From contig OZ037766.1 in the NCBI GenBank assembly GCA_964035545.1, positions 12,886,722 to 12,950,721 on the forward strand: 64,000 nt of DNA. The letters run 5' to 3'. The DNA comes from Bugula neritina. Taxonomy: Eukaryota; Animalia; Bryozoa. The stretch's first letter is position 1; every line of letters starts with the position of its first letter. Below the pieces are notes generated by a model. That model worked only from the letters and a program-made list of their open reading frames with translations. It was not told the DNA's origin and searched no databases. Of the stretch, positions 5,278-33,200 are shown piece after piece. The translations under genes and the position numbers were made by a program.

Positions 5278-5860
5278 GTGAGTAAGCTGTATTTAATTAT
5301 CAAAACATGAGGCTATATAATTTGTAAAATTGATTTTATATTTGATTATGCTTATGGTTATACTTACAATGTTTTAAATGAAATATGAAATATACCAATT
5401 TTCTCACCTAATAGTAATAGCCATAGTTTACAAATCTAGCTTGTAAGGTGGTTAGTCACTGTCTTCACAATTTTCCACAACTAATTTTTTATTATCAAAT
5501 ATAAATGAAACTAACTTTATTGTTGCAAGATGCCCTTTTAGCCTTTTTTCCTATACAATAATATTTTGTACTTGGCAAAAAGTACTGCAACCTCTTGTAT
5601 TTTGATGACTTTTAACCAATTGTAATATTTGGTGCTAATTTGCTGACATGTGATACTAAATGAAGTTAAACGACCCATTATTGGTATCTGCACACTATTT
5701 TGAGACTGAAATAATATTCACAAAATGAAACCAACTTTCAACTTTAACAATCAATTGCTGTTAGCTAAATTTATCACCCATTTACATTACTAAACATTTA
5801 TCAAAAAGCTACACCTAAGGCTGGCTTTGTTGGTGTTGTAGATCACCTAACAGTCAAACA

Positions 5861-8800
5861 ATGGAGGGGTTTATACGCCCTGACAGACCAAACTTTGGAA
5901 CAAGGGGAGATGGTATTATTCTCCGTGCAAATCATTTTAAGATCAAAGTTAAAAAGGGTTCCATACAGCACTATACTATCAAGATGCTTCCAGATAATCT
6001 ATCCAAGAGACATCGAAGGTACTGTTTGCTGTTTAATTTAAACTTATAACTCAAGTTTTCCACAAATTTATGTGTTTTGTCAGATGCATTTGCTGTCCAA
6101 ATTTGCTGTAAAATATTTATTCTCTAAGCATCCATTTTTAAAAAAATTGCATCTAAAACGTTTAAAACACTGAATTTCACTGCTTAATTGTACTTGCTTT
6201 CTGTATTTAGGAAAGTATTTGAGAAATTACTACAACTTTATTCTTCAATATTTGCTGGCCAGCTTCCAGTGTTTGATGGCATAAAGAATATATACAGTAA
6301 AGATCCTTTACCAATGATTAAGGGCAAGGTATAACAGTACTTCCTTTTGATTTATTCAGCTTCTGATACAGTTATTGATTCCCCAGGTTTTTATAATTTA
6401 AGGAACTTTGTTCAAAAGTTTGAATTGCTTTGTTTCCAGTATTTCTAGTGACCCTAATTCCACTTGTTTATGTTTTCCTGATGTTGAATGTATTAGTACT
6501 TATTTTGTACTTCAGGATCTGTTATCATTTTATAGAATTAAAATATTTCACACAAATTCAATGTATGAGTGTAAATAAAATATGATATTTTACAAATCAT
6601 AGAATAGCAAGTTGCAAGGCTGAAGAATAAATAACTGTCCCATCTGTTGATGTTTCCCTGTCTTTACTCTGGTTTATTATTGTACAGCTGGAGCTGGAAA
6701 CTTTGTTGCCTGATGATGAAAGAGTAAAAGTCACAGTCCTAATTCAATGGATCTCACAACTTAGTCTACCTTCTTTCTCTGGCTCATCAGATGAACTCAA
6801 CAATGAAATGCCATACAGTGCCATTCAAGTGTTAGATGTGATAATGAGGTATTCAGCCAGCTTGAGGTAAGTACATGTAAACTATAATATGACAAAAGAT
6901 TCTTTATAAAACTTTTAAACCATCTTTATTGTTTAAATACAATTGCACCTGTCAGGTAATTCCCTGGTTTTCTATCTGAAAATCTTTTCTCCCTTCATCA
7001 GTTAGATCTCCCTAGTAGTTGTTTTCTCTCATCTGAAGTATATATTTCGCTGTTTTGTATAAAAATAAAATATTTGCGGTTCGGAAATATAAAACCTTTC
7101 CGAACCACCAAAATTTTAAGATTGTATAAAGGTACTCAAATTTTGCATTGTTTTTAGATACACTCCAATTGGCCGATTTTTCTTTCAACCTCCAGAGAAC
7201 TCTAATCAGTCGTTGGGTGGTGGTAGGGAGGTGTGGCATGGCCATTTTCAAAATGTTCAGCTGTCTTGCTGGAAAACCATGCTAAATATGGATGTTGCTG
7301 CCACAGCGTTCTATAAAGCTCAGTCTGTTGAGAAGTTTATGATGGAGGTGAACTATGCTTATTTAGTCATATGTTACACTCTTGCTGGCAATAAATCCGC
7401 CTTCTATATTCAATCTCTGAATTTTTATACCTTCTATATTTTGCGGTTTTTTGTCTATAGTGAGGAAATTTTGAGTGCTGCTGCTCGAGAAAGAAATATA
7501 CGTTATTTGGTTGATTCTAGGTGCTGGGTATTACAGAGATGTCTCTTCAGACTAGGCCTCTTTGTGAGAGGCAGCGGAAAAAGTTTTATAAAGAGATAGT
7601 GGGCTTGAAGGTGGAAGTAACACATTCTGGGTATAAACGCAAATACAAAGTGACAGGCGTGACTAAACGCCCTGCACGCACACAGTCGTACGTATTCCAA
7701 AGTTGTTAGGTACAACTATTAGTGAGATAAGGGCATATCTGTAGTGTTTATTAGTAGATTGTCGTTGTTATTTTTTAAATAGCTGGTAAACTTCTGAAAT
7801 CTAAACTTAGCAGTATACAATGCTGCAGCTTTTATAGTTCAGTAATGAGAAAGTTCCTCATATTCCTAGTATTTATTGTCTAGGTTTCCCCTAACTCTGG
7901 AGTCTGGCCAGACTGTTGAATGCACTGTAGTTAAGTATTTCCGAGAGAAATATAATATTGAACTGGAATTTCCATACTTACCATGCCTTACAGTTGGGAA
8001 GGAGGAAAGACACACATACTTCCCTCTAGAGGTTTGTTTCTATTTTAGCAGCTGGTATTTTGTGTATTTAAGTTTCCAGGCTTATAATGAGCAGATGTTG
8101 GCTGAAGTAATTCTTATTTCTCATTAGTTCTAGTTTAGAAAGTTACTATCTTTTGAAAGATGCTTTGTGGAGTTTACTAGATGTTGCTGTAATTATTTTA
8201 GCCTAATTCAACAGTCACTCTTAGCAAATATTTTTTAAAAAGCATAAAATATTGTTTGCTTTATGAAAGCAAGTATTTGCAGGTTACTTGTTTTAAATAT
8301 CTAGACTGAAAGAGAATAAAATCTTCTTCCAAAATGTTTAGTTCTTTGTTTGGGTTGCAGCATATGCGTGTTTGTAACTTTTTAAAATTATTTGATTGAC
8401 TTTTAGAAATGATAGATGGGTGAATTGATATAAACTAATCAGAAATAGATCAATATTGATATTCTGATTCTTTTTCAGTTTATTGACTTTAAGATAAAAA
8501 GTATCAGAGTTGATTTATTTGTTGTAAAATAGTGAAAAATGGATAAATTGGCCATGTTTATGAATATTGATGTAGATATTTGAGTTGAATTGAATTGTGT
8601 AAAAATGTTTTTTGGAAACAGCTCTTGAATCATAATCTATATGGATACTTCAACAAAATAACCTAATTCCAAATTGAAGGTCAAATTTATGTTTCTTTTG
8701 ATAAGCCTAAAAATTATATATTTTGATTTTAAACTAAATTATTTCTCATATCTAGCTTACACCATTTAAAAAAATTTGTTCTAATGCATATAAATGTTAT

Positions 8801-11800
8801 AGTTTAAGTTACATTCTGAGAATTAGAAAATTATAAAAGTTGGATGCAAAAAACACTTTCTTTTAAAATAAACCCAATAAAATAGTTTCAAGGATCATAT
8901 TTAGTAACGTTGACAGAATACAGCACTTCAGGTTACTGGTTGCAGGTTTGTTCGATTGTAAAGGGTCAAAAGTGCAACAAGAAGTTAACTGACTTCCAAG
9001 CCTCTGGTATGATCAATGCGACAGCGCGCTCAGCTCATGATAGAGAAAGGGAAATTAACAACCTGGTAGGTGGTACTAAGTATGGTAGTGTTTAGTGCAG
9101 TAGTCTAAAGAACAGTATTATAGCTTCGCAGTCCTTCTTGTTATACTGTTTATTTTAAACAAATTTTCATCTTATATGATTTCAGGTGCTCCAGGCAAAT
9201 TTCAACGAAAACCCTCACCTTAGACAGTTTGATATATCTGTGAATACTGAAATGACCGAACTCAACGGACGAGTGTTGAGCCCCCCTATGATACTCTATG
9301 CGGAACCAGTAAGTTTTTGGTATTTTGGTCATCTAGTAATATAATTAACAAACTACCTAAATATGGATTTTAGAAAAGTAATCTGTCTGTGTAACTGGAT
9401 AATTTTTTGTAGAACATGGCGGAGCCGAGACGAGGAGTGTGGGATGGTAGAGAGAAACCATTCGTTGAAGCTGTAGTGATTGAAACTTGGGCCATAGCAT
9501 CTTTTGTTCCACAGGAATCGCTGGGAAGTGAAAATTTGAAGTGAGTTTTGTTAATTTATTAATTAAAAATAGCTTACACAAGTTGATAGTTTAATGGCCT
9601 TTGTCGGGTTCGAAACCATGACTTCATTTTCAAGTTATTAATTTTGCTCTTGCTAGCCTTTATAAAAATTATCTTGTAAAATTCTCCCAGCAAAAAAGTT
9701 TTAATGCAAAATAATCTAAGACCATAAATGCCATTCAACAATATTTTTTAATTTTCCAATGCATTAAATCAACTCCAACAGTTTGTTTACAAAGCACAAT
9801 GTGCTCTTTCTGTCACTGATACAAACTAAAGCTTTGATATTTTATGGAATGCAGTCATTTTCTTTTAGGAGCTTTGCATTGGAGCTTTACAGAAACTCGA
9901 GAAGTGCTGGACTGCATATAAAAAGACCTCCTAATTACAGATATGCAGATAGTGCAGAAATAGAATTATTGTTTAAGAAGCTGAAATCAGAGTTTCCAAA
10001 AATTCAACTTGTGTTTGTTGTCTTGCCTCCTAAAAACAAGATCTACGGTAAATATTGGCTGCTTAGCTAGTAATTTACATGTTAACTTATACCAAAACAA
10101 ACATTTTCTGAACTTGCACTTTCTTCTAATAAAAGCAGTCTGTTGAGTTATTGGTAGTCAGTACCTAATGGTGTTGTATTGCTTGCTGTGACCACGCTTT
10201 CTATACTTTTATAGCCGAAGTAAAGAGGGTGGCTGAGATTGTATGTGGAATAACTACACAGTGTGTGCAGCTTCAAAATGTACTCAAGCTATCTCCCAAA
10301 ACTCTTTCCAACATCTGCCTCAAAATAAATACCAAGTTGGGAGGTATTAACGCTGTTACAGAAAGAGATGCAGAGTTTGAAAAGAGGTATTTGTTCTGTT
10401 TACATGTATAATAGACTTTTGCTCACACACTAAAAAACACACACACACACATCCCATTAATTGTACTGCCCAATTTTTGTTATTTCTGCAACCAGTAGAG
10501 ACCATGTTTTTCGGCTTTGATATTATTGATACATGTCTTTGTCTTTTATAGAGGGCCTACCATATTCCTTGGAGCAGTTGTTACTCATCCTCCAGCTGGA
10601 TGCAGTCGGAGACCATCTATTGCAGCCGTGAGCACTTATGTTAATAAAACTATTATTGATTGATTTATTACACATCACAGACATAAAAAAATGTTGTGAA
10701 ATTCAGTGTAAATACTGGCTATAATAAGGTATGAACAAACTTGGGAAAAAAGGTCAGAACTGTATTGTATTCAATATCGAGTGCTGTAGTTAGTTTCTGA
10801 ATATATAAATCTATGTCATGATACTCAATGCCAAGTTTAGAGCAGTATTTGGAAATATTTCTTGTAGCCTTTTTATCGCTGGCATAGATACAAGTAAAAG
10901 TAATAGGTAGACCATACGCGGTGAGAGACATGATGAAACTGTTGAATGACATATATATTTGCTAGAGGTTTAGAGCTAAAATAGACAAATTTCTTCACAT
11001 TTGTCATTCTTCTTGATACTGTTGTAACCACTGATAAATCATGTTCCTGAAATCTCAAACTCTGATACAGCAAGGTATCTTACCATTTCATATTATTGCG
11101 TTTTAACGTATTGAGGAATAGCTTTATTTAGTAGATACTGGTTGAATTACAGGTTGTGGGTAGTATGGATGGCTTCCTCTACAGATATTTGCCTGAGATT
11201 CGACTTCAGACTAATGAAAGTGAGGTTATAGAAAACCTGGCTGATATGGTGAAAAACCTGCTTATAAAGTTCAAGATAAAAACAACCTGGAAACCAACTA
11301 AAATCATCTACTACCGCACTGGAGTGTGTGAGAGCCAGTTCAGCTATGTATGTCTACAGAAAAACTAGTAATAATTTTGCTTCAGTAATAAAAAGACTCC
11401 TTACAGCATCTTAGTAAACTAATGCTTCCATTTGGAGGCCAGATTGTGGTTAGTCTAACTGAAATAATATAGTTGTTGTAAACAAACTTTATAGTAAAAC
11501 TAAAAGTACAATGAATACTTCTTTGATTTCAAGGTGCTGAATTGTGAGGTGAGAGGTATAAGAAGGGCTTGTTTGATGTTGGAGAAAGATTACCAGCCTG
11601 GTATTACCATGATAGCTGTTCAGAAAAAACATCACACCAGGCTCTTCTGTGCTGACAAGAGAGATCAGATTGGTAGAAGTGGGAATATTCCTCCTGGTAC
11701 TACTGTTGACGTGGGAATCACACATCCTACCGAGTTTGATTTCTTTCTCTGCAGTCATGCTGGTGTCCAGGTAAATTGTTTTATCACTTGATCAATACTT

Positions 11801-12467
11801 TAAATATATCCTCATGAACTAACATTTTTAGAAACACTTTGAATTGTGTCATTTACATAAAACCAAAAGAGTAAGGCATTCTGATAGCCACTGTGTTCAT
11901 CTTAAGAGTTGAATGAATATAAATACATGGTACTGATGTACTGATGATTCTCACAGATAAATTACCTTTACAGGGTACCAGTCGACCGTCTCACTACCAT
12001 ATCCTCTGGGATGACAACAAATTCGGAGCAGATGAGTTACAAACCATGACTTATCAATTATGTTATACATATTCCATCTGCACCAGAAGTATTTCAATGC
12101 CAGCTCCTGTCTTCTATGTTCACAGCTTAGCCAACAGAGTTTGCGCATATCTGCAACACAACTACCAGGATAGGTATGTGATGGTCGGCTTCAATAATAT
12201 TGGCGTTTCTAATGTAATCCATTTGGGTTTATTGCATAATTTGATGGCTACCATGTTGCAATTGGTGATCTAAGATACAAATCTTTCGTTCCAATATTTT
12301 TGCTGCCCTATTGTCATTTCACTGCTGCTGCTCATCACTACTTCCCTTTTGCTTACAGTCCGGAAAGCAGTTACCACTCTGGAAGCGATGAGGAGATGAA
12401 TTTGGCTGAGCTGAGCAAATCTGTAATTGTTCATGATGATTTGGGGTCTTCTATGTTTTTTGTCTAA
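5861..12467 (+). CDS. Argonaute (AGO clade, miRNA-type-derived), paralog A1; 16 coding exons, predicted 832 aa; predicted non-slicer
   Basis: Exons 5861-6018, 6211-6328, 6688-6866, 7158-7347, 7521-7687, 7884-8031, 8946-9065, 9186-9308, 9413-9540, 9869-10047, 10215-10386, 10552-10627, 11153-11347, 11534-11770, 11974-12173, 12359-12467. All are GT-AG, phase-consistent and total 2499 nt. Motifs: [34 protein letters not shown]...[41 protein letters not shown]...GTSRPSHY, C-terminal MFFV*. AATAAA at 12686-12691. Confidence 0.95.
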
Positions 12468-13537
12468 CCTTCTCTCAATGATGTCTCTCTCATGACATTT
12501 CTGCAGGCTATTTTGTCTTTATAGTAATTAGTTTTATCACAGGTACTAATAACTTTCTTGTAAGCTGTATTGTTAGCAGATGCATATGCTCAGTAATACG
12601 ACTGCTATTAACACATGCTAAATGCTTACTTTTTTCTTTTAACCCAAAATATGATTTTAGTTTTCAAGTATTAGTAGGCTGCAAGAATAAAATCACTGTA
12701 AATATTCCATCAAGTTTTGCTTTCTATTTTACTCTACAGTACAAATTGTCTGAATTGCACTAAAAATATTTCATGCAAATTGAAGTGATTATGTAGTCAA
12801 TAGAAGCTCTATATAACGTACTGAATAATATTCTACAACACAAAACTTATGGAAGTAGTAAACTTTTCATTATAAAATAATCATTACCCTCATTACTGCT
12901 AACAAGAAAGCAAATAATATAAGTTGCAGTCTAAAAGGAAGTAAATATGAGGTGCAGGACACTTGATAGAGGTCTGCATTAAATTCATAGTGAGCCAATA
13001 AAAAGGTGATAAGGAAACACTGTTGCATACTTGTAATATAAACAATTTAGGACCGTTTTTTGTTACAAACTGGTCTCATATTAAAGGGAATATTCAAAAT
13101 GGCTTTCTAGATAATCGCTTTTTTATACTATATTTGAGAATGTTTCATAAAATACCTACATAATACTATATTTTATCCTCCAAATAAAATCTCTTTATTG
13201 AATGGCCACAATTGTCATTAAAAAACGACTGCCTTCGTAATTTCAATCAAATTAGCTACGTTGGGGAGACTATCAAGTTTTTCAAATACAGCTTAAAGAT
13301 CAGGCAAGGCTATCTAGCTGTCTAGTATTGTCTAATGAATTTATTGTATTTTAATGCTAGAATAGCCCATCTAGTAGATACAAGAAAAGCAAGCTTTGTA
13401 AATATAGCTTTGCAAAAGTAGCTTCTTGAAGCAGCTTTTTGGAGCACATAAAGCAAATATTTGTGGTGAATATACCAGTTACCATTTGACTGGTAAAGTC
13501 TGCTGGCGTTGTTTGAGTATTAGTTTGTTTTATAAAT

Positions 13538-14757
13538 ATGGCTTCAAGTGCCCATGCAGAGTGCAGCTTTCAGCTTGCCAAGTTTAGATGTCCTGACAGA
13601 CCATCATTGGGAAGTGAAGGACAGCCAATTTCTCTCTCAGCAAGTATTTTCCAATTGTTTTTCTCGGAACAATACATTCATCATTATGCCGTTACCATAA
13701 CTCCTGGAAACTGTCCTATTGGAATCAACAGGTATTTATTTATTCCTACTCTAATTATTTCATTGATATGCTGAGAAACTCATTCACACATGTTATATTC
13801 ATCTGTTTGTTTCCATTTGCTAAGTAGTTTTTCATACTATATTATTTGGTGAGCTGCCATTCTATAGAGTTTATAAATATAAACTCATATGGCATGTGCT
13901 AACTCACCACTGATCTATATTATGCTACAATATAAACTCACTGTTGTATTAGTATTTTTGCATGTCTTAGTGTGTGTGTTAGTGTGTATGTGCTTGTGTG
14001 TGTGGGTGTGCTTGTGTGCGTGGGTGTTGGTATGTAATTTACCTAAAGTATGTAAGTATGCATTTGTATGTTATATACATAATATATGTGATATATAATA
14101 ATATATACACACCTAATACTACATGTATAGCATATTATAAACAATACATATTTGAACATTAGGATAAAACAGAATTTCCTCTATTTAAAACTTTAGATAT
14201 TGACAGACATATTTTTTTTCTTCAAACTATAGGGAAGTAATTCAAAATCTGATCAAGAAATATTCTTCGACAATCTTTGCTGGCCAGTGTGTGGTGTTTG
14301 ATGGCAGAAGGAATATGTACAGTAAATATCCTTTACCAACTGGTAGAGGCAAGGTAATAATGTTGTCCTTTGCTATTCACGGTTGCAGGTCAATGCTATT
14401 CTAACAGGAATTGATTTAACTTTTTTCAGAAAATACAATTTTAATAAAACTAAATTCAACTTTGCAATATATGCTACTTCATTCATTTGTACTAAGTAAG
14501 TATCTGCTACAAATTTAACTTTTAATTTACTGTTATTGTGATTCACTTTCTACAAGTAGATTTACTTGTCTGTAGTTGGAACTAGAATCACAGTTAGCTG
14601 ATACAGAAGGAAATGGGGTATTCACAGTCTCTTTAATGTGGGTCACACAAGTTAGTCCGGCTGCTTTAGAAGATGTGTTGAATGGAGAGATGCATCAACT
14701 TCAACTGAATGCTAATCATGCCTTTAACACTATATTGAGGGATTTACCAAGCACTGT
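13538..14757 (+). pseudogene. Partial Argonaute B' (exons 1-3 only, N domain); truncated duplicate of AGO-B with an open reading frame, possibly 5' exons of AGO-A2
   Basis: Exons 13538-13731, 14233-14353 and 14576-14757 match AGO-B exons 1-3 with identical lengths (194/121/182 nt), no stops and intact splice sites. Similarity to AGO-B ends near 14980, inside intron 3. Confidence 0.85.
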
Positions 14758-15706
14758 GTAAGTACACCTACAGGATAGCAAATAAGAAAAACATCTACTA
14801 CCTGTTATTTAATGCAGCTCTAAAAAACCGGGTTCCTATTTATTGTGTAAGTTGGTTTTTCTCACATCAGTTAAAATATTTTACTAGATCAAGTATATGA
14901 AAAAAGGTTTCATGCAACAGCTTTTTATTTGCTATTACCTAATTGCGTAAAGTTTATCGATTTGACAAGGCTATATTTATTTTATATTTATAGGAATATA
15001 ACTGCTGACGTAAAAAGTTTGTTACCTAAAAATAATGATGCGTTTAATAATGTTGCTACACTTCCCACACAATTTGTATAGACTTTTGTTAGAAAACATA
15101 AATGCCTTGGTTATTTTCGCATCATGGTGAGTAAACTGTGTTTAATTATCAAAACACAAGGCTATATAATTTGCATAATTAATGTTATATTTCGCAAATA
15201 GTTATACTTACATTGTTTTAAATGAAATATGCGTGACCAATGTTTTCACTTGATAATAATAGTTTACAGAAAGTAGCTTATAAGCTTATAAGATGGTTAA
15301 TTACTCTCCTCACAATTGTCCACAACTAATTTTTTATTATCAAATGAAAATGAAACTAACTTTATTGTTGCAAGATGCCCTTTTAGCCTTTTTTCCTAAA
15401 CAATAATATTTTGTACTTGGCAAAAAAATGCTGCAGCTTCTTGCATTTTGATGACTTTTAACCAATTGTAATATTTGGTGCTAATTTGTCAACATGTGAT
15501 AATAAATGAAGTTAAACAGCCCATTATTGGTATCTGCACACTGTTTTGAGACTGAAATAAAATTCACAAAATGAAACCAACTTTCAACTTTAATAATCAA
15601 TTGCTGTTAGCTAAATTTATCACCCATTTACGTTACTAAATATTTGTCAAAAAGCTACACCTAATGCTGGCTTTGTTGGTGTTGTAGATCACCTAACAGT
15701 CACACA

Positions 15707-18700
15707 ATGGAGGGGTTTATACGCCCTGACAGACCAAACTTTGGAACAAGGGGGGATGGTATTATTCTCCGTGCAAATCATTTTAAGATCAAAGTTAAAA
15801 AGGGTTCCATACAGCACTATACTATCAAGATGCTTCCAGATAATCTATCCAAGAGACATCGAAGGTACTGTTTGCTGTTTAATTTAAACTTATAACTCAA
15901 GTTTTCCACAAATTTATGTGTTTTGTCAGATGAATTTGCTGTCCAAATTTGCTGTAAAATATTTATTCTCTAAGCATCCATTTTTAAAAAAATTGCATCT
16001 AAAACGTTTAAAACACTGAATTTCACTGCTTAATTGTACTTGCTTTCTGTATTTAGAAAAGTATTCGAGAAATTACTACAACTTTATTCTTCAATATTTG
16101 CTGGCCAGCTTCCAGTGTTTGATGGCATAAAGAATATATACAGTAAAGATCCTTTACCAATGATTAAGGGCAAGGTATAACAGTACTTCCTTTTGATTTA
16201 TTCAGCTTCCGATACAGTTATTGATTCCCCAGGTTTTTATAATTTAAGGAACTTTGTTCAAAAGTTTGAATTGCTTTGTTTCCAGTATTTCTAGTGACCC
16301 TAATTCCACTTGTTTATGTTTTCCTGATGTTGAATGTATTAGTACTTATTTTGTACTTCAGGATCTGTTATCACTTTTTAGAATTAAAATGTTTCACACA
16401 AATTCAATGTATGAGTGTAAATAAAAAATGATATTTTACTAATCACAGAATAGCAAGTTGCAAGGCTGAAGAATAAATAACTGTCCCATCTGTTAATGTT
16501 TCCCTGTCTTTACTCTGGTTTATTATTGTACAGCTGGAGCTGGAAACTTTGTTGCCTGATGATGAAAGAGTAAAAGTCACAGTCCTAATTCAATGGATCT
16601 CACAACTTAGTCTTCCTTCTTTCTCTGGCTCACCAGATGAACTCAACAATGAAATGCCATACAGTGCCATTCAAGTGTTAGATGTGATAATGAGGTATTC
16701 AGCCAGCTTGAGGTAAGTACATGTAAACTATAATATGACAAAATATTCTTTATAAAACTTTCCATAATCATGTTCATTGCTTAAATAGAATTGCGCCTGT
16801 GAGGTAATTCCCTGGTTTTCTATCTCAGAAATGCCCTCCCCCCAGTACCTCAGTTAATTCTCCCTTAGTAGTTGAATTCTATTATCTGAAGTAGACAAAT
16901 TTAAATTTTGCTGCTTATATGTAATCACTTATTTGCAATATTTGAAGCTTTTTTGTGTAAAAATAAAATATTTGCGGTTCGGAAATATAAAACCTTTCCG
17001 AACCACCAAGATTTCAAGATTGTATGAAGGTACTCATAATTTTGCATTGTCTTTAGATACACTCCAATTGGCCGATCTTTCTTTCAACCTCCAGAGAACT
17101 CTAATCAGTCGTTAGGTTGTGGTAGGGAGGTGTGGCATGGCCATTTTCAAAATGTTCAGCTGTCTTGCTGGAAAACCATGCTAAATATGGATGTTGCTGC
17201 CACAGCGTTCTATAAAGCTCAGTCTGTTGAAAAGTTTATGATGGAGGTGAACTATGCTTATTTAGTCATATGTTACACTCTTGCTGGCAATAAATCCGCC
17301 TTCTATACTCAATCTCTGAATTTTTATACCTTCTATATCTTGCGGTTTTTTGTCCATAGTAAGGAAATTTTGAGTGCTGCTGCTAGAGAAAGAAATATAC
17401 GTTATTTGGTTGATTCTAGGTGCTGGATATTACAGAGATTCAGACTAGGCCTCTTTGTGAGAGGCAGCGGAAAAAGTTTTGTAAAGAGATAGTGGGCTTG
17501 AAGGTAGAAGTAACCCATTCTGGGTATAAACGCAAATACAAAGTGACAGGCGTGACTAGTCGTCCTGCACGCACACAGTCGTACGTATTCCAAAGTTGTT
17601 AGGTACAACTATTAGTGAGATAAGGGCATATCTGTAGTGTTTATTAGTAGATTGCCATTATAATTTTTTGAATAGCTGCTGAACTTCTAAAATCTAAACT
17701 TAGCAGTATACAATGCTGCAGCTTTTATAGTTCAGTAATGAGACAGTTCCTCATATTCCTAGTATTACTTGTCTAGGTTTCCCCTAACTCTGGAGTCTGG
17801 CCAGACTGTTGAATGCACTGTAGTTAAGTATTTCCGAGAGAAATATAATATTGAACTGGAGTTTCCATACTTACCATGCCTTACAGTTGGGAAGGAGGAA
17901 AGACACACATACTTCCCTCTAGAGGTTTGTTTCTATTTTAGCAGCTGGTATTTTGTGTATTTATGTTTCCAGGCTTATAATGAGCAGATGTTCCCTGAAG
18001 TAATTCTTATTTCACATTAGTTCTAGTTTAGAAAGTTACTATCTTTTGAAAGATGCTTTGTGGAGTTTACTAAATGTTGCTGTATTTATTTTAGCCTAAT
18101 TCAACAGTCACTGTTAGCATTTATTTTTGAAAGAGCATAAAATATTGTTTGCTTCATGAAAGCAAGTATCTGCAGGTTACCTGTTTTAAATATCTAGACT
18201 GAAAGAGAATAAAATCTTCTTCCAAAATGTTTAGTTCTTTGTTTGGGTTGCAGCATATGTGTGTTTGTAGCTTTTTAAAATTATTTGATCGACTTTTAGA
18301 AATGATAGATGGGTGAATTGATATAAACGAATCAGAAATAGATCAATATTGATATTCTGATTCTTTTTCAGTTTATTGACTTTAGGATAAAAAGTATCAG
18401 AGTTGATTTGTTTGTTGTAAAATAGTGAAAAATGTATAAAATTGGGCATTTTTAAAAAGTGTTGATGTGGATATAATTTATTTTTGTCTTCTTTAAATAT
18501 TTGAGTTGAATTGAATTTTGTAAGAATGTTTTTTGGGAACGGCTGTTAAATCATAATCTATATGGATACTTCAACAAAATAACTTATTTCCAAATTGAAG
18601 GTCAAATTTATGTTTCTTTTGATGAGCCTGAAAATTATATATTTTGATTTTAAACTAAATTATTTCTCATATCTAGCTTACACCATTTAAAAACTTTTGT

Positions 18701-21700: not shown

Positions 21701-22367
21701 TTAAATATATCCTCATGAACTAACATTTTTAGAAACACTTTGAATTGTGTCATTTACATAAAACCAAAAGAGTAAGACATTCTGATAGCCACTGTGTTCA
21801 TCTTAAGAGTTGAATGAATATAAGTACATGGTACTGATGTACTGATGATTCTCACAGATAAATTACCTTTACAGGGTACCAGTCGACCGTCTCACTACCA
21901 TATCCTCTGGGATGACAACAAATTCCGAGCAGATGAGTTACAAACCATGACTTATCAATTATGTTATACATATTCCATCTGCACCAGAAGTATTTCAATG
22001 CCAGCTCCTGTCTTCTATGTTCACAGCTTAGCCAACAGAGTTTGCGCATATCTGCAACACAACTACCAGGATAGGTATGTGATGGTTGGCTTCAATAATA
22101 TTGACGTTTCTAATGTAATCCATTTGGGTTTATTACATAATTTGATGGCCACCATGTTGCCATGGTGATCTAGGATACAAATCTTTCGTTCCAATATGTT
22201 TGCTGCTGAATTGTCATTTCACTGCTGCTGCTAATCACTACTTCCCTTTTGCTTACAGTCCGGAAAGCAGTTACCACTCTGGAAGCGATGAGGAGATGAA
22301 TTTGGCTGAGCTGAGCAAATCTGTAATTGTTCATGATGATTTGGGGTCTTCTATGTTTTTTGTCTAA
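15707..22367 (+). CDS. Argonaute paralog A2 (tandem copy of A1); 16 exons, predicted 830 aa; predicted non-slicer
   Basis: Exons 15707-15864, 16057-16174, 16534-16712, 17057-17246, 17420-17580 (6-nt in-frame deletion vs A1), 17777-17924, 18867-18986, 19107-19229, 19334-19461, 19765-19943, 20113-20284, 20452-20527, 21053-21247, 21435-21671, 21875-22074, 22259-22367. No frame breaks were seen. Confidence 0.95.
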
Positions 22368-25300
22368 CCTTCTCTCAATGATGTCTCTTTCATGCCATAT
22401 CTGCAGGCTATTTTGTCTTTATAGTAATTAGTTTTATCACAGGTACTAATAACTTTCTTGTAAGCTGTATTGTTAGCAGATGCATATGCTCAGTAATATG
22501 ACTGCTATTAACACATGATAAATGCTTACTTTTTCCTTTTAACCCAAAATATGATTTTAGTTTTCAAGTATTTGTAGGCTGCAAGAATAAAATCACTGTA
22601 AATATTCCATCAAGTTTTGCTTTCTACTTTACTGTGTACAAATTATCTGAATTGCACTAAAAATATTTCATGCAAATTAAAGTGATTATGTAGTCAATAG
22701 AAGCTCTGAATAATATTCTACAACACAAAACTTATGGAAGTAGTAAACTTTTCATTATAAAATAATCATCACCCTCATTACTGCTAACAAGAAAGCAAAT
22801 AATATAAGGTGCAGTCTAAAAGGAAGTAAATATGAGGTGCAGGACACTTGATAGAGGTCTGCATTTAATTCATAGTGAGCCAATAAAAAGGTGATAAGGA
22901 AATACTGTTGCATACTTGTAATATAAACAATTTAGTACAGCTATTTTACAAACTGGTCTCATATTAAAGGGAATATTCCAAATGGCTTTCTAGCTAATCG
23001 CTTTTTTATACTATATTTGAGAATGTTTCATAAATTACCTACATAATACTATATTTTATCTTCCAAATAAAATTTCTCTATTGAATTGCCATAATTGTCA
23101 ATAAAACCGCCAGCTTTTGTAACTTCAATCAAATTAGCTACGTTGGGGTGACTTTCAAGTTTCTTACTGTTATGCACTTTTCCAAATACAGCTTAGAGAC
23201 TAGACATGGCTATCTAACTGTCTAATATTGCCTAATGAATTTATTTTATTTTAATGCTAGAATCACCCATATAGTAGATACAAGAAAAGCAAGCTTAGTA
23301 AATATAGCCTTGCAAAAGTAGGTTCTTAAAGCAGCGTTTTAGAGCACATAAAGCAAATAATTGTGATGGAGATACCAGTTATTATTTGACTGGTAAAGTC
23401 TGCTGGCGTTGTTTGAGTATTAGTTTGTTTTATAAATATGGCTTCAAGTGCCCATGCAGAGTGCAGTTTTCAGCTTGTCAAGTTTAGATGTCCTGACAGA
23501 CCATCATTGGGAAGTGAAGGACAGCCAATTTCTCTCTCAGCAAATATTTTCCAATTGTATTTCTCGAAACAATACATTCATCATTATGCCGTCACCATAA
23601 CTCCTGGAAACTGTCCTATTGGAATCAACAGGTATTTATTTATTCTTACTCTAATCATTTCATTGATATGCTGAGAAACTCATTCACACATGTTATATTC
23701 ATCTGTTTGTTTCCATTTGTTAAGTAGCTTTTCATACTATATTATTTGGTGAGCTGCCATTCTATAAAGTTTATAAATATAAACTCATGTGGCATGTGCT
23801 AACTCACCACTGATCTATATTATGCTACAATATATACTCACTGTTGTATTAGTGTTGTGTGTGTGTGCGAGTGTGCGAGTGTGCTATATACATACTATAT
23901 GCAATATCTAATAATATATACACACCTAATATTACATGTATAGTAGGTATCTTATAAAAAATACATATTTGAACATTAAGCAAAACAGAATTCTAAAATT
24001 TAGATATTGAAAGACATGTTATTTTCTGCAAACCGTAGGGAAGTAATTCAAAATTTGATCAAGAAATATTCTTCGACAATATTTGCTGGCCAGTGTGTGG
24101 TGTTCGATGGCAGAAAGAATATGTACAGTAAACATCCTTTACCAACTGGTAGAGACAAGGTACTAATGTTGTCCTTTGCTATTAACGTTTGCAGGTCAAT
24201 GCTATTCTAAAAATACAATTTTAATAAAATTAATTTAAACTTTGCAATATATTCTACTTCATTCATTTGTACTTTAAGTGCGTATCTGTTATAACAAATT
24301 TGATTTTTAATTTACTGGTAATGTGATTCATTTTCTACAAGTAAATTCACTTGTCTGTAGTTGGAACTAGAATCACAGTTACCTGATACAGAAGGAAATC
24401 GGGTATTCACAGTTTCTATAAAATGGGTCACACAAGTTAGTCTGGCTGCTTTAGAAGATTTGTTGAATGGAGAGATGCATCAACTTCAACTGAATGCTAA
24501 TCATGCATTTACCACTATATTAAGAGATTTACCGAGCACTGTGTGAGTGCACCTACAGGATAGCAAATAAGAAAAACACCTACAACCTTTTTAGGGCCAT
24601 CCTATTTATCATATAGAGTAGTTTTTCTCACATTAGTCAAAATATTTTACTAGATCAAGTATATAAAAACTTAAACAGCTATAATGCAACTGCTTTCTAT
24701 CTGCCATTAATGGTGTAAAGTTTATAACTTTAAAAAAGCTGTATTTATTAAATTTTTTTTACAAAATAAACAGCAATTGTTTTGAAATAAGCAAATACAA
24801 GGCGATATGCAACAATAACATAGCTTTCTCCTTGGAAAGGTAGAGTTCACTTTTTAATATTTTTCATAAAAAAAGCATTAGGCTTTGTTTTTCTTATTGA
24901 GGATTTCTTAGTTGCTCATTTCTGTACACTACTCATAATACTTATTACAAGTTTGATAATAATATCCCAAAGTATCCCCTCGCCCTTTCCTAGTTACACT
25001 TCTGTCTCTTTTCCTAGTGACACTCCTTTTCGTGAATGTTTCTTTCTACCCCTGAGGAGATGTGAAGACTCCATGGGTTTTGATAGGAAGGAATTGTCTG
25101 TCTGCCACCAAACTGTCAAGTCATGTATTTGGAAGCCAATGGTAAACATAGATGTGTCAAATGCAGTGTTTTATAAAGTACAGCCGGTTTTGGAATTCTT
25201 AGAGGAGGTAAAACACATGCCTTTATAATATTTATAAAACCATGCATTTCTGCCTTAATCTATAATACATGTGCTAGTGATATACACACACATGCTTCCC

Positions 25301-28300
25301 ATTTCAATTTAAACAAAGTATTACTTTCAGCTTTGTTCTTGTCTAAAGGTTGGTTACTCTACTACTGATTGGAAAGATAAACACTATTCTTTTTAAAGTA
25401 CACTGAGCTATGATAATGAATTTTTCATTCTAATGTATGTTTTGTCCATGGAAATATTGTTTGTTTGGTGGGTTTATACAGGTATTGCAGATTCCACATC
25501 TGGCCAGCCATGCTTTGCCCTTGACTGCAGCTCAAAGAGCTAAGTTCTGTAAAGAGATAAAAGGTTTAAAAGTGGAGGCAGCTAATACAGAGTTTAGGCA
25601 GAAATACCTAGTAATAGATGTTACTAATCTGCCTGCATTTACACAACCGTATGTATTGTAAGAATATCAGGTGAATTCAGCTTCTGATTTGAAACTACTT
25701 TCAAGTTTCTAAAGCTAGTTATTAGCATTTTTAAGAATATTGAAGCTTTTACTAGGTTTTTTTGATTCTGAAACTTCTTTTACTAGATTTAAAAGCCTTT
25801 AGTTTAAAACAAAGTTTTTCAAAAAAAGCTCATGAAAATGATGAAAAAGTTTATATTATCTTATGCAAATAATGTTTGACTCTTTGGTTACTCAGAATAT
25901 TTTCTCTCATCAAAGTTGGATATTCCATGTCACCATCAGCAGCAGCAGCAGCTATCATTTTAGTGTCACTCATTGCTGAGAAGGATTTCACTCTTTTCTG
26001 TTCTTTTCACTATTTCTGTGCTTTAGGTTTCCAATGCCAATTGGAGAAGAAACTGTTGAATGTACTGTGGCACAATATTTCCAATACAGATATAAAAACG
26101 AACTTCAATTTCCACATTTTCCATGCCTACAAGTTGAATGGAAGCAAAAACAAATATATTTTCCTTTAGAGGTTTGTATCATATGTGACTTTTGATCTGT
26201 CTTATAGTAAAAAACAGTTCTTGGCATAGGCCACAATCTGTTGTGTTGACAGATGTAATATATTTTCTATGCCTAAAACCAAGCGATAGCAGAAATATTT
26301 AGCTATAGGTTTATTTGCTCTGCATTGCCAATTATTAACATCTATTCCAGGTATGGTGTTCCTGATTCAATTTGTTGACATTTTTGTACTTGTCTGCAAT
26401 TAAAGATATAGTTTTTGACTAATTTGTTCATGTTGTCTTTTATCCAGCCTAATGCAATAATCTGTTAAACAAGTTTTTCAAAATTACTTTTGTTTTCTAA
26501 CAATTTTGCAAATTAATGTATAAAGATGACTTTTCTTTAGGTATGCTGCATTGTGGATGGTCAGAGGTGCATCAAGGAACTTACTGGGCAGCAAAATTTG
26601 CTTAAAGCCACAGCCGGTTCAGCCCCTGATACACAAAGTGATATCAACAATGAAGTAAAGAATATATTTCGCTGGCTGTGGCAACTATCACTTTGTAAAC
26701 TGAAGCACATGCTTGTATCGGTGTATTATAAGTATACTAGTAATCGTTTTTGTACCGGATATAAGTAGCTTGCAATTTTGCTTGTCAAATATTTTGAACT
26801 TACTATACTAGGTCTTTAAATGTTAGCTGCAAGGTTTTGTGGTTTACCAGTAAAGTTATGGAGCAGGTTACTCAATTTCAACTTTTTTGGGATTACATGA
26901 GTAGTAGCAAAAAAGTTCACTTATAAGCTAAATACACTAGATTTATTTCTGAGAACAGTCCATTTGTTCTCATAGACATTAAAAATTAAATGTGGTTGCA
27001 GATGGCGGTAGCTAAATTCAACCATGGCTTACTGCAGTTTGGTATATTTGTGGGTGATAAAATGAGAGAAGTACAGGGGCGAGTGTTGAGTCCCCCTGCT
27101 ATACTATATGGTGGAAAGGTGAAGTATCAGGTCTTTTTAAAATTTCTGTAATTCACTTGCTTTTGATGCCTTATTCCTACTTTTTAAAATATCATTGGCT
27201 TTGTGATACTTAAATACACATAGCTTTTGTACATAACTATCATGCCGTTTTTATATGAAATAGTTGCAATTTTTGCAGACAGAAGCATTGCCTATTCAAG
27301 GCACGTGGGATATAAAGAATAGAAAGTTGTTTGCTGGCATTAGGATTGATGTGTGGGCTATAGTGTGTTTTGTTCCTTCAACATCAATGGAAATTGGCAT
27401 GTTGGTGTAGGTTTACAGTTTAAACTCGCTGTGGCATTCATATTGCAACTTCCTATAGAATGATCACTGTTTAGTGTCATTATAAATTTGACATTTATAA
27501 TTTTAATTTAAAATAAGCTGTTTTTTCCAGTTAATAGGAAGGAACATGTTTTAATGGAGTCAAAGCAAACCTGTAGGTAGGTAGGTAGGTTAAAGTTTGT
27601 ACACACCCTTCTGCAACTTGTCTAAATAATATAAATATAGCAAAAGCCTGCATATTCCTTCCATTCTTAAACAAAACTAGTGTCCTTTTGAACAGATTCT
27701 TCCCGCTCAACTATATATGTAATATTTTAGTTATTCTTATGAATTTCAGACTAATTATATTTTCATTATAGAGAATTTACTAATCAACTCCACCTTGTCT
27801 CAAACAAACTTGGAATGCACATAGTAAGAACTCCTTGCTGCTGCCAATACGCATCTAGACCAGAAGAGGTTGAACCCTTGTTTCAACAGCTGATAAATAG
27901 ATATCCATCACTTCAACTTGTGTGCGTTGTGGTCTCTTACCAATCTCCAGTCTATGGTAACAGCTACTTTTTAGCTAATTGCTATTATGTTACAAGAATA
28001 CCCCATTTAGTCCCATAACATTTCCTGTTGTAACTCTATTGTCGCAGAACTTTCCTCTTCCGGTTTTGGAGTAGGTCTTAAACTTTTATAAGAATATTAC
28101 AACCACCCCCAGCTGTAACTCTTGGTTTTAGAGCAGCAGGTTTCAAACTATTGTAAGAATATTACAATCTCTTGCCACTTTGTTTATTAAGGCACTTGTA
28201 AATATTTATTAGAAATTGCTAAGTTAATTCAATATGCATATGCATATATTATGTAATTCATCATTTCATGCAACCTAACATATTCTGTTGCTTATTAAAG

Positions 28301-29288
28301 TTGTGCTGATCTATTTTAGTGTACACAGTTATCTTAGCAGATGGGTAAATTTATTTCAATGACTTTTTCACCAAAATACTAAAACAATTCTCCACGACTG
28401 CATTGCTTTCTGAATATATATAGCATACCAGTTATTAGACACACTTAGCAGTTTGTTTGAAGTTTGATTAGATAGTCTTCATGCGATTTTCATTTTTTTA
28501 GCTGAAGTTAAAAGAGTAGGTGACACTGTAGTTGGATTGGTTACACAGTGTGTACTTTCCAAAACTATTCATAGCTTATCTCCACAAAGACTCGCCAACA
28601 TCTGTCTCAAAATAAATACCAAACTTGGTGGGGTCAACAACATTCTACTACCCAGCATCAGGCCAAGTGTATTTGAGTAACTATTAATACTATTTATTTC
28701 CTTAATTGTGTGTTCTTCCATGTTTGTTACAAGTCGTAAATGTGAATTATTTTCTCGATCAAAATGTTTGAGTAAAAAACTTGTATACTATATTTTGCAT
28801 TTTCCTAGTGATCAGACAAAATATAGTTTAAAATATTTTTGCGATTTTATAGTATTAAGAGAACATTTTACTTGTTTTATTGGTATGTTTTCAACTGCAT
28901 GCGATATCTATGAAATGGGTATAGAGTTTTCTTAAATTAAATAAACACTATCTTGGAATTTACCATAAGGACATAGTAATATATTTAGCATATAATTTAT
29001 TTTTATTCGCCTAAATTGTATAGAGTATTTTCTGATATAGAATATATTTGATATTATTTTCTTAATTTGATTCATTTATAGAAAACCTGTGATCTTTTTT
29101 GGAGCTAATATTAACCACCCGCATGTTGAAGGCCTTGACGAAGTAGCCATTGCAGCTGTAAGTTTTACTTATGTGTCTTGTTTGACATTTCTCACAACCA
29201 AATTTGGCTATTTTTCTTGCTTATTGAGCTACTTATATTGCAAGTGACTGTAGTTATGTTCTAATTGCTAGGCCATTGAAAAATAATT

Positions 29289-29360
29289 GCCCCCACTGGG
29301 AATCAAACCCTAGACCTCTGGCTTGCAAGCAAGTGTGCTAACCATTACACCACAGGGACC
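29289..29360 (-). mobile_element. tRNA-derived SINE head or tRNA pseudogene in AGO-B intron 12
   Basis: Minus strand reads GGTCCCTGTGGTGTAATGGTTAGCACAC...GGGTTTGATTCCCAGTGGGG. It has an A box and a degenerate B box (GTTTGA), but poor acceptor and anticodon stems. Confidence 0.65.
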
Positions 29361-30060
29361 ACTGGGTAAACTTGTCACTACAGCCATATTAAACAGATTT
29401 GAACTGTGCTGTTTTAGGTTGTGGCTAGTATAGATGCCCACCCCTTTCGCTACTCCTCCACTGTGTGGGTCCAGAAGAATAAGCATAATATTATAGAAGA
29501 CCTGGCTGGTATGGTTAAAAAGCTGCTTATATCTTTCTACATAGCTACCAAGTATAAACCACATAGAATTATCTTCTACCGAGCTGGAGTGTGTGAAAGC
29601 CAGTTTAGTCAGGTACGTCTTCCAAAAGACGAGAAATAATTACTTCAGTGTTAAAATGACTGGTTACAACATTTTAGAAATTTAATAATTCCATTTGGAG
29701 ACTAGGTTGTGGTTAGTTTAACTGAAATAATATAATTGTAAAACACGTTATAGGGAAAATCTGCTAGTTTTTTTTACTAAAAGTACAATGAATACTTTTG
29801 GTATTTCAAGGTGCTGAATTATGAGGTGAGAGCTATAAGAAGGGCTTGTTTGATGTTAGATATAGAATACCAGCCTGGTATTACACTAGTAGCAATTGAC
29901 AAAAAGCAAAATATACAACTTTTATGTGCTGACAAAAACAATGAAACTGGCGAAGGTCGTAACATACCCGCTGGTACAACTGTGGACTGCGGAATCACAC
30001 GTCCATCTGTGTTTGATTTCTTTCTCTGTAGTCACAGAACTGCACAGGTAAAAACATCCT

Positions 30061-30204
30061 ACTATTTTCTGCAGTTGTATGCTCTATTCTGCAGTTGTAT
30101 GCTCTATTCTGCAGTTGTATGCTCTATTCTGCAGTTGTTTGCTCTAGTCTGTGATTGTTTGCTCTATTCTGCAGTCCTCTGCTCTACTTGGCAATTGTCT
30201 ACTC
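30061..30204. repeat. 20-bp minisatellite (gcagttgtatgctctattct), about 7 copies decaying toward the 3' end, in AGO-B intron 14
   Basis: Directly visible tandem units. Confidence 0.95.
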
Positions 30205-33200
30205 AACCCTGTATCCATCTTCTGTAGAAGTAGTATTATTGACTCAAAACTATTGACAGTGAAAACAAATTTGTAATTTATTTTTCTTAAATTTATCAGG
30301 AATTTTTTTGAATTCTTTACAGGGTACTAGCCGCCCGTCTCACTACCATATTCTCTGGGATGACAACAAATTCGGAGCAGATGATTTGCAAAAACTGACG
30401 TATCAATTATGTCATACATTTGCACCAGAAGTATTTATGTACCAGCTCCTGTTTACTATGCTGACCTTGTAGCTAGTCGAGCTTGCAGTCACCTGAATAA
30501 AAAGAATAATAGCAGGTCTGTCACAGGCTGTCTATGCTTATTGGTAGTGAAATAATACAGCAGTTATACTATGATAACGGATATAGATACTATTGTAAAG
30601 GCTCTTGCTTTTCTGTCAGTGAGAGACTTCGACTTACTGATTGAGGAGACGTAACTCAAATAATTTAGCCCAGATAGATGTTTTATTGTACTCACAAAAA
30701 GTGTCTTCAGTATAATGCACATCATTGGATTGCTAAGTTTCTATACAAGATTCACATAGGCCTTTTTGTAAGAAGGAGGGGGTAGTATGCTGGTGTGACA
30801 TTTTATCTAATCCACCGATATATAGCTGTGTTTTCATTGGGTTAAACATTTCAAGTACTTATAAACCATTTAGCTGCTACTGTATGTATGCACTCATTAA
30901 TTAAAACAAATATATGATAAAGGAAGCCTTACAGTTTTATACTGAATAAACAGTTACATAATTCAATTTGATTTAATTTAGTTTAATTCATTTAAACATG
31001 TTTACATAAGAAGCAAAGAAGGAAGTAAAAACCTAAAAGTGCTTGTCCATCATGTATACCATAATTATCTTATGCCTATTGCCTATGTCTAATATTATTA
31101 ATTTTTATTTAACAATGTTTTTTGTAAATTAAAAGTTACTTTTGTGCTAATTTGTTAGCTTGTACAAATTTATTTGAAGCAGTTTTATTATTAAGGTGAT
31201 AATATAATATTCTAATTAAAGATTCTTTTTTAAAATTTATTGTTTGAAACAAAGCAACTTTCTTGCAAAACCATGAAGATTTCAAGCAGTGAAACTTGAT
31301 AAAACTACCAGTCTTTTACTATTAGTGCAAGTGGATATATTTTATAAATGTCAGTCTTATCCCTGCACGAAGATATTTTCAATTACACTATTTTTGTGTT
31401 GTTTACAGTTGTGGAAGCAGTTATATTTCTGAGAGCGATGACAAGATAGATTTGGCTGAACTGAACAGAGCTGTGAAAGTCCATCCAGCATTGAAATATT
31501 ATATGTACTTCATTTAACCCTCACAATACAATGAACATGACCACTTCATACTAGTGCTTGTCTTGGGCAGCCACCACTAAAAGAATATTCTCATGATATT
31601 ACATCATGTATATAGTTTGTAGTTGAGAGTTTGATATTAATATATTATAATCCCCTATAAAAGCCCTACAACTTCTGACATGTGCATCAAACTATGATGA
31701 ATGTAAGTTTGATTTAAGCAAGAAAGAAATTGATATTTAGTATACCGATTGCTGCAATAATATGCTGCCTTGTGGCAATACACATGCAGACCTTGATTGA
31801 AGTAATCTAATAAAATCCTCATTGTGGTAATATACTACTTTGGCATTTGTAACACCTTCTCTATCAAACCAAAATTTAGTTTAGTATAATGAAAATATAA
31901 TTTGAAAATTGTCACTAATATATCATTTTTAAAGTCCACTAAAACCCCTGTAACTTAGATTTTTTTATGTATGTCTTTATGCGTTTTATAATGCTATACT
32001 TCTGCAATAATTTATATAATATAATACAAATAAAAGCATTTTCAAGAAAAAGTCAACAACAATTTAAACTAATGATGTTTTGGAACAGATGAATTATTTA
32101 TACAGCAGCTGGTAAATTTTTTTTAATTATTAGCACTAATTAAACTTTATAGTAAATACCTTGTAGCTAGTAGGTGTATGACTTTACATAAAAAGTTCTC
32201 CAGAGATTATCTAGCATATCCCATCATGGCAGCATCACCTTTTCAGAATATATTAATTAACTTATAAAATTAATTGGTTCATTGTATTAAACTTCATTCA
32301 TTACAGCTTTTAAAACCATAGATGATGTGCATTTCAATAAACCATAGGTGCTCAGCAATCATCAAGTCTATTCCATTATAGCAGTGCCATCTACAACAGT
32401 TGTGTCTTAGTTTAGACTCATGATATCCAACCTTTTTTTTATTAACCTGAATGCAAAATCAAGCTAAGTAAACATTTTACAGCGCTGAACCTAACTTTGG
32501 AAACACATTTTACCAATTTTTAAGCTTTTTTAGAATGATTCTGCCAAAAGCTCAAGTTACCTAAGGCAACTTCTGTGATACCTAAGGTTAGCGCATTACT
32601 TTACCCAAACTATTTCGGTTGCAAAACATTCGCATCATTAGTTTCACTTTTCTTAGCGATTCCATTTCATTCCAGAGACACCTTTTCCGCTCATGTGCTT
32701 ATGTAACTAAGCAGTAAATTCAAATTATCCAGTCTGAGTCTATTCTCAGACTCAAGGCTTCAGCTAAATATCATATCAATGATAACCACTAACAGTGTAA
32801 AACTTCGTGATTTTAATTCATGATTTTACTCATTATACAAATATTTATCGTAATTCTAATACTTAGTTAATTATATGTTGGTCTATTTTTAATCTATAAT
32901 AATAATTATATTTAATTCATTTCAGAGATAAACTTAAAGTTAAAGTTAAAGATTTAGATTGAAAATTGAATTATATATTTAAATTTTAAAATAAAAAATA
33001 AATACCTATAGTTATACTTTCTTACATTTATGATTTACCTAATTTTATCGTTACTTGTAGTTGTATTTCAAGTTTAAATTATTTTATATTTCGATTTCTT
33101 AATTTTAATTTACAGGTGTTGGTTACCGTTATCAGTTATGCCTTATGGTAGACACAGTCATAACAGTCAATCACCTGCCTAGGTGAAAGTTCATTCATTT

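Follow-up and report, generated by a model that had tools for sequence, protein, structure and literature searches.

A tandem family of probably slicer-dead Argonautes derived from the miRNA-class AGO of the bryozoan Bugula neritina

Within a 64,000-nucleotide stretch of the Bugula neritina genome (assembly GCA_964035545.1, contig OZ037766.1, positions 12,886,722 to 12,950,721 of the forward strand; hereafter the window, meaning this stretch at its full length), positions 5861-31517 carry three Argonaute genes of 16 exons each, termed A1, A2 and B (A1 and A2 together: A), as well as a fragment termed B', all on the + strand. These genes probably constitute a tandem family of catalytically dead Argonautes that is specific to this lineage and was born from the bryozoan's own microRNA (miRNA)-class AGO. 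A first-pass annotation of the window had already described a tandem expansion in which a miRNA-class AGO gave rise to lineage-specific Argonautes that do not cleave, and the phylogenetic trees, an approximately unbiased (AU) test and the identical intron positions reported below bear this description out; its additional claim that catalytic residues were lost independently probably stands for one residue and probably falls for another.

Gene models were obtained with a protein-to-genome spliced aligner, which required GT-AG introns, accepted all intron phases and allowed frameshifts: The full-length flatworm AGO1 P0045 served as guide for a canonical AGO upstream of the window, and the canonical protein thus obtained served as guide for the genes within it (Table 1). 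The canonical gene shares its strand with the A1/A2/B cluster and is located approximately 10-18 kb upstream of window base 1. It is intact, comprises 16 coding exons, is 76% identical to P0045 in the spliced alignment, and displays the complete DEDH tetrad of a slicing Argonaute in the motifs GADVTHP, RQEIIEDL, YRDGVSEGQF and YYAHLVAF. All 15 intron positions and their phases are identical among canonical AGO, A1, A2 and B. In the spliced alignment, both A and B are collinear with the canonical protein over its full length and thereby share its N-PAZ-MID-PIWI architecture; in Pfam searches, A1 matches PAZ and Piwi above cut-off and ArgoN weakly (22 bits vs a cut-off of 30.9). Translation and a splice-site check revealed uninterrupted open reading frames (ORFs) in A1 and A2 with all 30 splice sites intact. 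The A and B paralogs derive from this canonical AGO, as detailed below.

Table 1. Coordinates of the Argonaute genes and related features. Positions without prefix are those of the window.
Feature	Location	Strand	Description
A1	5861-12467	+	16 exons, 832 amino acids (aa), intact ORF, all introns GT-AG, tetrad V-E-T-H; spliced alignment to canonical AGO
A1 exons 1-8	5861-6018, 6211-6328, 6688-6866, 7158-7347, 7521-7687, 7884-8031, 8946-9065, 9186-9308	+	
A1 exons 9-16	9413-9540, 9869-10047, 10215-10386, 10552-10627, 11153-11347, 11534-11770, 11974-12173, 12359-12467	+	
B'	13538-14757	+	partial B copy, exons 1-3 only: 13538-13731, 14233-14353, 14576-14757
A2	15707-22367	+	16 exons, 830 aa, intact ORF, tetrad V-E-T-H
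B	23438-31517	+	16 exons, tetrad N-N-A-D, open except for one exon-15 frameshift
B frameshift site	30415-30430	+	exon 15 nucleotide alignment and frame analysis
Segmental duplication, first copy	5116-13956	+	matches 14978-23856; self-blastn
Canonical miRNA-class AGO	L027:1879-9778 and L027:9999 to L031:104 (G000:C2 ~12868600-12876825)	+	spliced alignment
PIWI-clade genes	contig C4 at 9.39 Mb; contig C2 at 7.08 Mb		outgroup in tree

For the assignment of active site residues, the numbering of human AGO2 was set by phmmer searches of single exons against Protein Data Bank (PDB) sequences. A complete DEDH tetrad is present in the canonical neighbour and absent from A1/A2 as well as from B: At the position of D597, A1 carries a valine (GTT 10577-79, residue 9 of exon 12) and at the position of D669 a threonine (ACT 11318-20, residue 56 of exon 13), and it keeps the glutamate at E637 and the histidine at H807. 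In B, the PDB alignment places an asparagine (AAT) at E637 and an alanine (GCT 29583-85) at D669, and an aspartate (GAC) occupies the position of H807, where it is readable only in the frame that follows the shift at ~30421-30424. Exon 12 of B (25 aa) is too diverged to find a PDB match alone; the asparagine at its D597 position (AAT 29107-09) was assigned from a gap-free spliced alignment to the canonical exon. The four codon coordinates for the two aspartates are the same as in the first-pass annotation and are all correct. It had also described two binding pockets as preserved, and here again the alignments agree: Of the 5'-phosphate pocket, K533, Q545, C546, K566, K570 and R812 are kept in A1 (PDB alignments) and in B (alignment to canonical AGO), and Y529 is kept in A and B (alignment to canonical AGO). 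Likewise, F653, K660, P661, R688, L694 and Y698, which we take to be the residues of the PIWI tryptophan (GW182) pocket, are conserved in A and B according to the PDB alignments and the alignment to canonical AGO. Every A or B exon with a PDB match has human AGO1-4 as its best match, with PIWI matches far weaker. At other, presumably RNA-contacting positions B is more eroded than A, with QKRHHTRLF turned into DKKQNIQLL and 'ITH' of the PAZ domain into 'AAN' in the alignment.

A phylogeny, which had been proposed as a check on the origin of these genes, was built by maximum likelihood (ML) from 23 rows under LG+C20+F+G4 and rooted on a PIWI; its named references are thin and include no human, fly or C. 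elegans WAGO sequences. The topology is (canonical,(B,(A1,A2))), and both nodes receive 100/99 (ultrafast bootstrap, UFBoot/Shimodaira-Hasegawa-like approximate likelihood ratio test, SH-aLRT). The canonical branch has a length of 0.038, the A/B stem of 0.15, and the A and B branches of 0.60 and 0.62, respectively, i.e. the paralog branches are about 20 times as long as the canonical one. A quick tree of 45 rows agrees and, in addition, puts a metagenome copy, L035, together with A. Forcing the canonical gene and flatworm AGO1 into a clade that leaves out A and B costs 18.3 log-likelihood units (lnL) and is rejected by the AU test (p-AU 0.006). The canonical/A/B group nests with flatworm AGO1 and with nematode and priapulid AGOs, inside the miRNA-AGO clade. 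On the amino acid level, A is 57.5% and B 57% identical to the canonical protein, A and B are 47-48% identical to each other, and both are 50-51% identical to flatworm AGO1; in the joined sequences used for identities, dN/dS, simulation and trees, the frameshift of B was represented by an X. From the tree, the AU test and these identities we conclude that A and B descend from one duplicate of the lineage's own miRNA AGO and that they are lineage-specific derivatives of this miRNA-class gene. Two other affiliations were considered and rejected. Membership of the nematode WAGOs, from which the genes had been regarded as separate from the outset, is excluded by the sister position of A/B to their own canonical miRNA AGO (tree, AU test). 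For the PIWI clade, the two PIWI-clade genes of the genome form the outgroup and the PDB matches to PIWI are far weaker than those to AGO. The proteins of a separate cluster, P0063, have the motif 'GVCES' in common with these genes, but read D-E-D-K and are placed by the tree outside the canonical/A/B clade.

The order in which the catalytic residues were lost can be read from the codons. The canonical codon is GAT at both D597 and D669. At D597, a single step leads from GAT to GTT in A and likewise to AAT in B, whereas GTT and AAT differ from each other by two steps, so that an independent change in A and B is cheaper in steps than a shared origin, and to this extent the proposal of independently lost residues looks right. 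At D669, by contrast, the proposal gives way to a shared loss in the two sister lineages: A change from GAT to GCT in the A/B stem followed by GCT to ACT in A takes two steps, whereas independent losses take three, and most parsimoniously D669 was lost once, in the A/B ancestor. Because A and B share a well supported stem (100/99) and because of the step count at D669, slicing was probably lost only once; the likeliest course is a single loss in the A/B ancestor, after which the useless site would have eroded separately in each lineage.

Several comparisons bear on selection. Between A1 and A2, the rate of synonymous substitution (dS) is 0.044 and that of nonsynonymous substitution (dN) 0.012, which corresponds to an omega (dN/dS) of 0.28; 24 of the 47 changes are nonsynonymous vs an expected 78% (binomial p=3e-5), and the Jukes-Cantor (JC) distance over the 15 introns equals dS. 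The dN/dS ratio, the other check that had been suggested for this locus, is hence not near 1. Comparison of A1 with L035 (exons 12-15) gives dS 0.136, dN 0.061 and omega 0.45 (p=0.011), and that of B with B' (exons 1-3) dS 0.107, dN 0.039 and omega 0.36 (p=0.01); relative to the canonical gene, where dS is about 1 and thus saturated, dN is 0.30 and omega 0.30 for A1 and 0.33 for B. Moreover, we simulated neutral evolution by mutating the canonical coding sequence to 43% amino acid divergence (n=200): The simulated sequences accumulate 12-35 stop codons (mean 23), whereas A1, A2 and frame-corrected B contain none. From the dN/dS values and the stop-free frames as compared with this simulation, we conclude that purifying selection, weaker than on the parent gene, has acted on the family during most of its existence.

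The arrangement of the cluster points to repeated duplication. A2, which is 97% identical to A1 on the amino acid level over the aligned tree columns and separated from it by the low dS given above, is by these measures a recent duplicate of A1. The segmental duplication, whose unit consists of A plus the 5' end of B, shows 93.7% identity over 8957 aligned bases, and B' is a remnant of it: B' keeps the ATG, open frames and all splice sites including the exon-3 donor, and is 91% identical to exons 1-3 of B on the amino acid level. The adjoining B'/B stretch (14066-14989 vs 23879-24757) is just 82% identical compared with 93.7% for the duplication, and the history is therefore a layered one, either with an older duplication that was partly homogenised or with two events. 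As an aside, the exon-3 donor of B' and the exon 4 acceptor of A2 are both of phase 2, which makes an in-frame chimeric transcript of B' (exons 1-3) and A2 (exons 4-16) possible.

Three observations suggest gene conversion among the paralogs. The metagenome copy L035 is a 2.6-kb contig from Joint Genome Institute (JGI) metagenome 3300003318, which was found via P0151 and comprises exons 12-15 of a third A-type gene (L035:700-2595). On the nucleotide level its identity to A1 and A2 is 85%, and in a stretch made up of part of exon 13, intron 13 and exon 14 it matches B at 80%; it keeps the valine and threonine of A and at the same time carries B-like tracts (21 protein letters, not shown). L035 may be an orthologue from a sibling lineage or else one more paralog. 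Intron 13 is also the sole intron that is alignable between A1 and B (75% identity over 550 nt, 11226-11757 vs 29491-30034), as would be expected from earlier conversion in this tract or from a conserved element within the intron. Lastly, sequencing runs X2-X4, which stem from a different sample, contain a contig of ~2.4 kb that matches A1 at 12021-12094 (3 mismatches, no gap) and is then identical to B from 30437 onward. This mosaic spans the site of the frameshift in B and suggests that B-type 3' ends without the 7-nt deletion described below exist in other individuals.

A number of observations weigh against a working family of this kind, and they concern expression, distribution and the state of individual copies. 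No spliced transcripts were detected, in data that speak neither for nor against expression: Among the contigs mapped on A1 (6470-12469) there are no exon-exon joints, and none of the listed runs is on record as RNA. Run X1 covers this stretch in full and is DNA, because introns and exons are covered alike; runs X2-X4 contribute short pieces only, which are 95-99% identical and in some cases have intron flanks; and the only further runs listed as sharing words with the A1 stretch (~5% each) are 'symbiont metagenome' runs, in keeping with a Bugula holobiont. When exon 13 of A1, exon 13 of B and exon 14 of A1 were each searched against proteins, no spliced A- or B-type protein fragment was recovered; the searches returned canonical-type exons of other organisms and the one A-type contig (P0151/L035) only, with full-length annotated proteins falling outside the length window. 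A metagenome scan with B exon 14 produced matches of at most 58% identity, some of which have the canonical exon-14 length, the rest being unclassified, and a representative search with the A1 exon-14 ORF gave no match above 83% identity. An orthologue of A or B in another bryozoan species was not recovered in these exon searches. Furthermore, both the loss of slicing and the binding of GW182 are predictions from residues, the latter from the six conserved pocket positions. B has lost the equivalents of H271, R280, R710, H712 and R714 in the alignment, which are presumably RNA-contact positions, and as assembled its protein ends early, after '...LCHTF' and 16 out-of-frame residues. In exon 12 of L035, 'RRPSIA' of a core PIWI strand is missing owing to an in-frame deletion of 18 nt; therefore, not every copy need be functional. 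Finally, the omega values of 0.28-0.45 are relaxed vs the canonical gene.

Taken to the extreme, these observations would make A1, A2 and B unexpressed, decaying pseudogenes of the canonical AGO. Such a reading would account for the lack of RNA evidence and of exon-exon joints in the contigs on A1, for the frameshift of B, for the deletion in the PIWI core of L035 and for the fast evolution of the family. It is very unlikely all the same, given that A1 and A2 have retained complete reading frames of ~830 aa with every splice site intact, that functional pocket residues have been kept selectively, that neutral drift predicts stop codons where none are seen, and that dN/dS between A1 and A2 is low at a dS identical to that of their introns; from the neutral simulation and the A1/A2 ratio together we reject wholesale decay. 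Even less credible is the idea that A and B are survivors of an ancient siRNA (small interfering RNA)-class ('siAGO') lineage that merely adjoins the miRNA AGO. One could invoke for it that Pfam searches of the genome found no other AGO-clade gene, that long branches can mislead trees, and that proteins of the siAGO group have been reported for some bryozoans in a published survey (PMC11114477). However, A/B are the sisters of their own canonical gene with 100/99 and nest within the miRNA-AGO clade, the alternative topology is rejected (p=0.006), both proteins are closer to the bryozoan's canonical AGO than to flatworm AGO1 (57% vs 50-51%), and their intron positions are identical to those of canonical AGO. 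Long-branch attraction, moreover, would draw A/B away from the short canonical branch and not towards it.

The status of B calls for separate treatment. Its exon 15 is 7 nt shorter than that of A1/A2 at ~30421-30424, which shifts the frame, and because of this frameshift B is not intact in the assembly. In the shifted frame, the 66 codons 3' of this site can be read through as far as the homologous stop, and there is no other lesion in ~830 codons. It is therefore conceivable, if not our favoured reading, that B is also a working gene and that the frameshift is either an assembly error or a null allele of the sequenced haplotype only, as the dN/dS of B vs B' (0.36) and the mosaic contig of X2-X4, A1-like without a gap across the site and then B-identical, would allow: The latter suggests that versions without the deletion exist. 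On the other hand, a gap of 7 nt that does not lie in a long homopolymer is unlikely to be a long-read error, and B has lost all four tetrad residues plus several RNA-contact residues. We infer that B functioned during the greater part of its existence and that the copy in the sequenced haplotype is most likely a null, either broken recently or polymorphic.

For the preferred reading, a tandem family derived from the miRNA-class AGO, the following course of events can be proposed. A canonical DEDH AGO would have been duplicated; the copy would have lost the second catalytic aspartate (D669 to Ala) and evolved ~20 times faster than its parent; it would then have split into A and B, in which the first aspartate changed separately (to V in A, to N in B) and B would also have lost the glutamate and the histidine; and a later segmental duplication of A plus exons 1-3 of B would have generated A1, B' and A2. 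As the 5'-phosphate pocket of the MID domain and the residues of PAZ have been preserved in genes on which selection acts, A1 and A2 probably load small RNAs. With both aspartates gone they would not slice, and most likely they would repress their targets via a GW182/TNRC6-type partner or by steric block, in analogy to vertebrate AGO1/AGO4. Their rapid evolution would fit a specialisation for defence, germline or colony-specific roles, which is speculation on our part.

The undescribed small-RNA pathway that the first-pass annotation had considered is hypothetical. Six-frame Pfam searches for Piwi and PAZ, which covered the whole assembly of 216,009,554 bases, revealed only seven Argonaute-type loci: the four genes of the cluster, two PIWI-clade genes and one PIWI-like gene on contig C216. 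A separate siRNA-class AGO was not found in these searches, and a search for the RNA-dependent RNA polymerase (RdRP, PF05183) gave no match in the assembly, although this search was weak and its controls were also silent. Because neither an siRNA-class AGO nor an RdRP match was found and no Dicer-2 has been reported in bryozoans, A and perhaps B, released from slicing and quick to evolve, might represent a re-invented second small-RNA arm that serves cleavage-independent silencing of viruses or transposons, or a colony- or germline-specific role. We consider this doubtful; if true, the second arm would be a convergent counterpart of the WAGOs built from a miRNA AGO, in a lophotrochozoan that seems to be without a classical siRNA Argonaute. 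Irrespective of this, the locus offers a clean and datable order of events, in which a miRNA-class AGO was duplicated, lost slicing, evolved about 20-fold faster and was duplicated again under purifying selection. Bryozoan small-RNA biology is almost unexplored, and A1 and A2 are candidates through which the role of a non-slicing, fast-evolving AGO could be approached.

No new principle is involved here: AGO paralogs that cannot slice are familiar, as are AGO expansions within single lineages, and A/B can be compared with three such systems. Human AGO1 and AGO4 are likewise miRNA-class paralogs with an incomplete tetrad; they keep the guide-binding MID and PAZ domains and the tryptophan pockets for GW182 and silence without slicing, as A/B are predicted to do. 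Human AGO1-4, however, are ~80% identical to each other and slow-evolving, whereas A/B are just 57% identical to their parent, have branches ~20 times longer, and go back to an independent, lineage-specific duplication; also, human AGO1 has changed the histidine and AGO4 the second aspartate and the histidine, whereas A has lost both aspartates. The nematode WAGOs resemble A/B as a lineage-specific, fast-evolving expansion without catalytic residues. They load 22G RNAs made by RdRP and are of unrelated origin, whereas A/B stem from the bryozoan miRNA AGO and have kept miRNA-class motifs in MID and PIWI. Finally, the AGO duplicates of other invertebrates, such as those of AGO2 in the Drosophila obscura group and the flatworm-specific AGOs, are also recent, tandem or dispersed and fast-evolving, and they are usually read as specialisations for the germline or for antiviral or transposon defence. 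Most of these go back to an siRNA-class AGO, and as a rule their catalytic tetrad is retained; in B. neritina, in contrast, the parent is a miRNA-class gene and the tetrad is gone.

Models of these genes are probably already contained in a survey of lophotrochozoan RNAi genes (Genome Biol Evol 2024), which used an older B. neritina assembly (PMC11114477). Its supplement lists the AGO models Bugula_ne_g27968 (901 aa) with a strong MID match as well as g27971 (621 aa) and g27974 (1003 aa) with weak MID matches (PMC11114477); going by their neighbouring numbers and MID matches, not by their sequences, they are probably the canonical gene and divergent paralogs of this cluster. The text of the survey does not discuss these Bugula paralogs, and paralog clades are collapsed in its figures; in the main text, 'catalytic' occurs in the Dicer passage only, and 'DEDH' and 'slicer' are absent outside the reference list (PMC11114477). 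The survey assigns proteins of some bryozoans to the siAGO group and reports no Dicer-2 from bryozoans (PMC11114477). The present locus gives reason for caution in this respect: Among the bryozoan proteins that broad surveys label 'siAGO', some may be long-branch derivatives of miRNA AGO.

Additional features were noted in the assembly and around the cluster. C216, an unplaced contig of 36.7 kb, carries its divergent PIWI-like gene at 33756-35433 with in-frame TAA/TAG codons within the PAZ and Piwi matches; this pattern fits a ciliate genetic code, and the contig may come from an epibiont and not from the bryozoan. One further PAZ match without a Piwi match is located on contig C9, for which Dicer is a guess. 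Between canonical AGO and A1 there are an NMD3-like exon (L031:7298-7660, - strand), identified by eye, and an (AGC)n repeat of ~1.9 kb (L031:3918-5837). Exons resembling the mitochondrial helicase Twinkle, again identified by eye and with a motif of this helicase (10 protein letters, not shown), lie 3' of B at 33442-37618 (+ strand). On the - strand, window positions 42343-64000 contain four open exons of great length (893, 925, 1063 and >1934 aa), which consist of Thr/Ser/Glu-rich tandem repeats of 33 aa (99 bp) and three of which share the C-terminal tail 'TTLSPTQNT.SSQAICK'; they look like a tandem array of genes for mucin-like secreted proteins.

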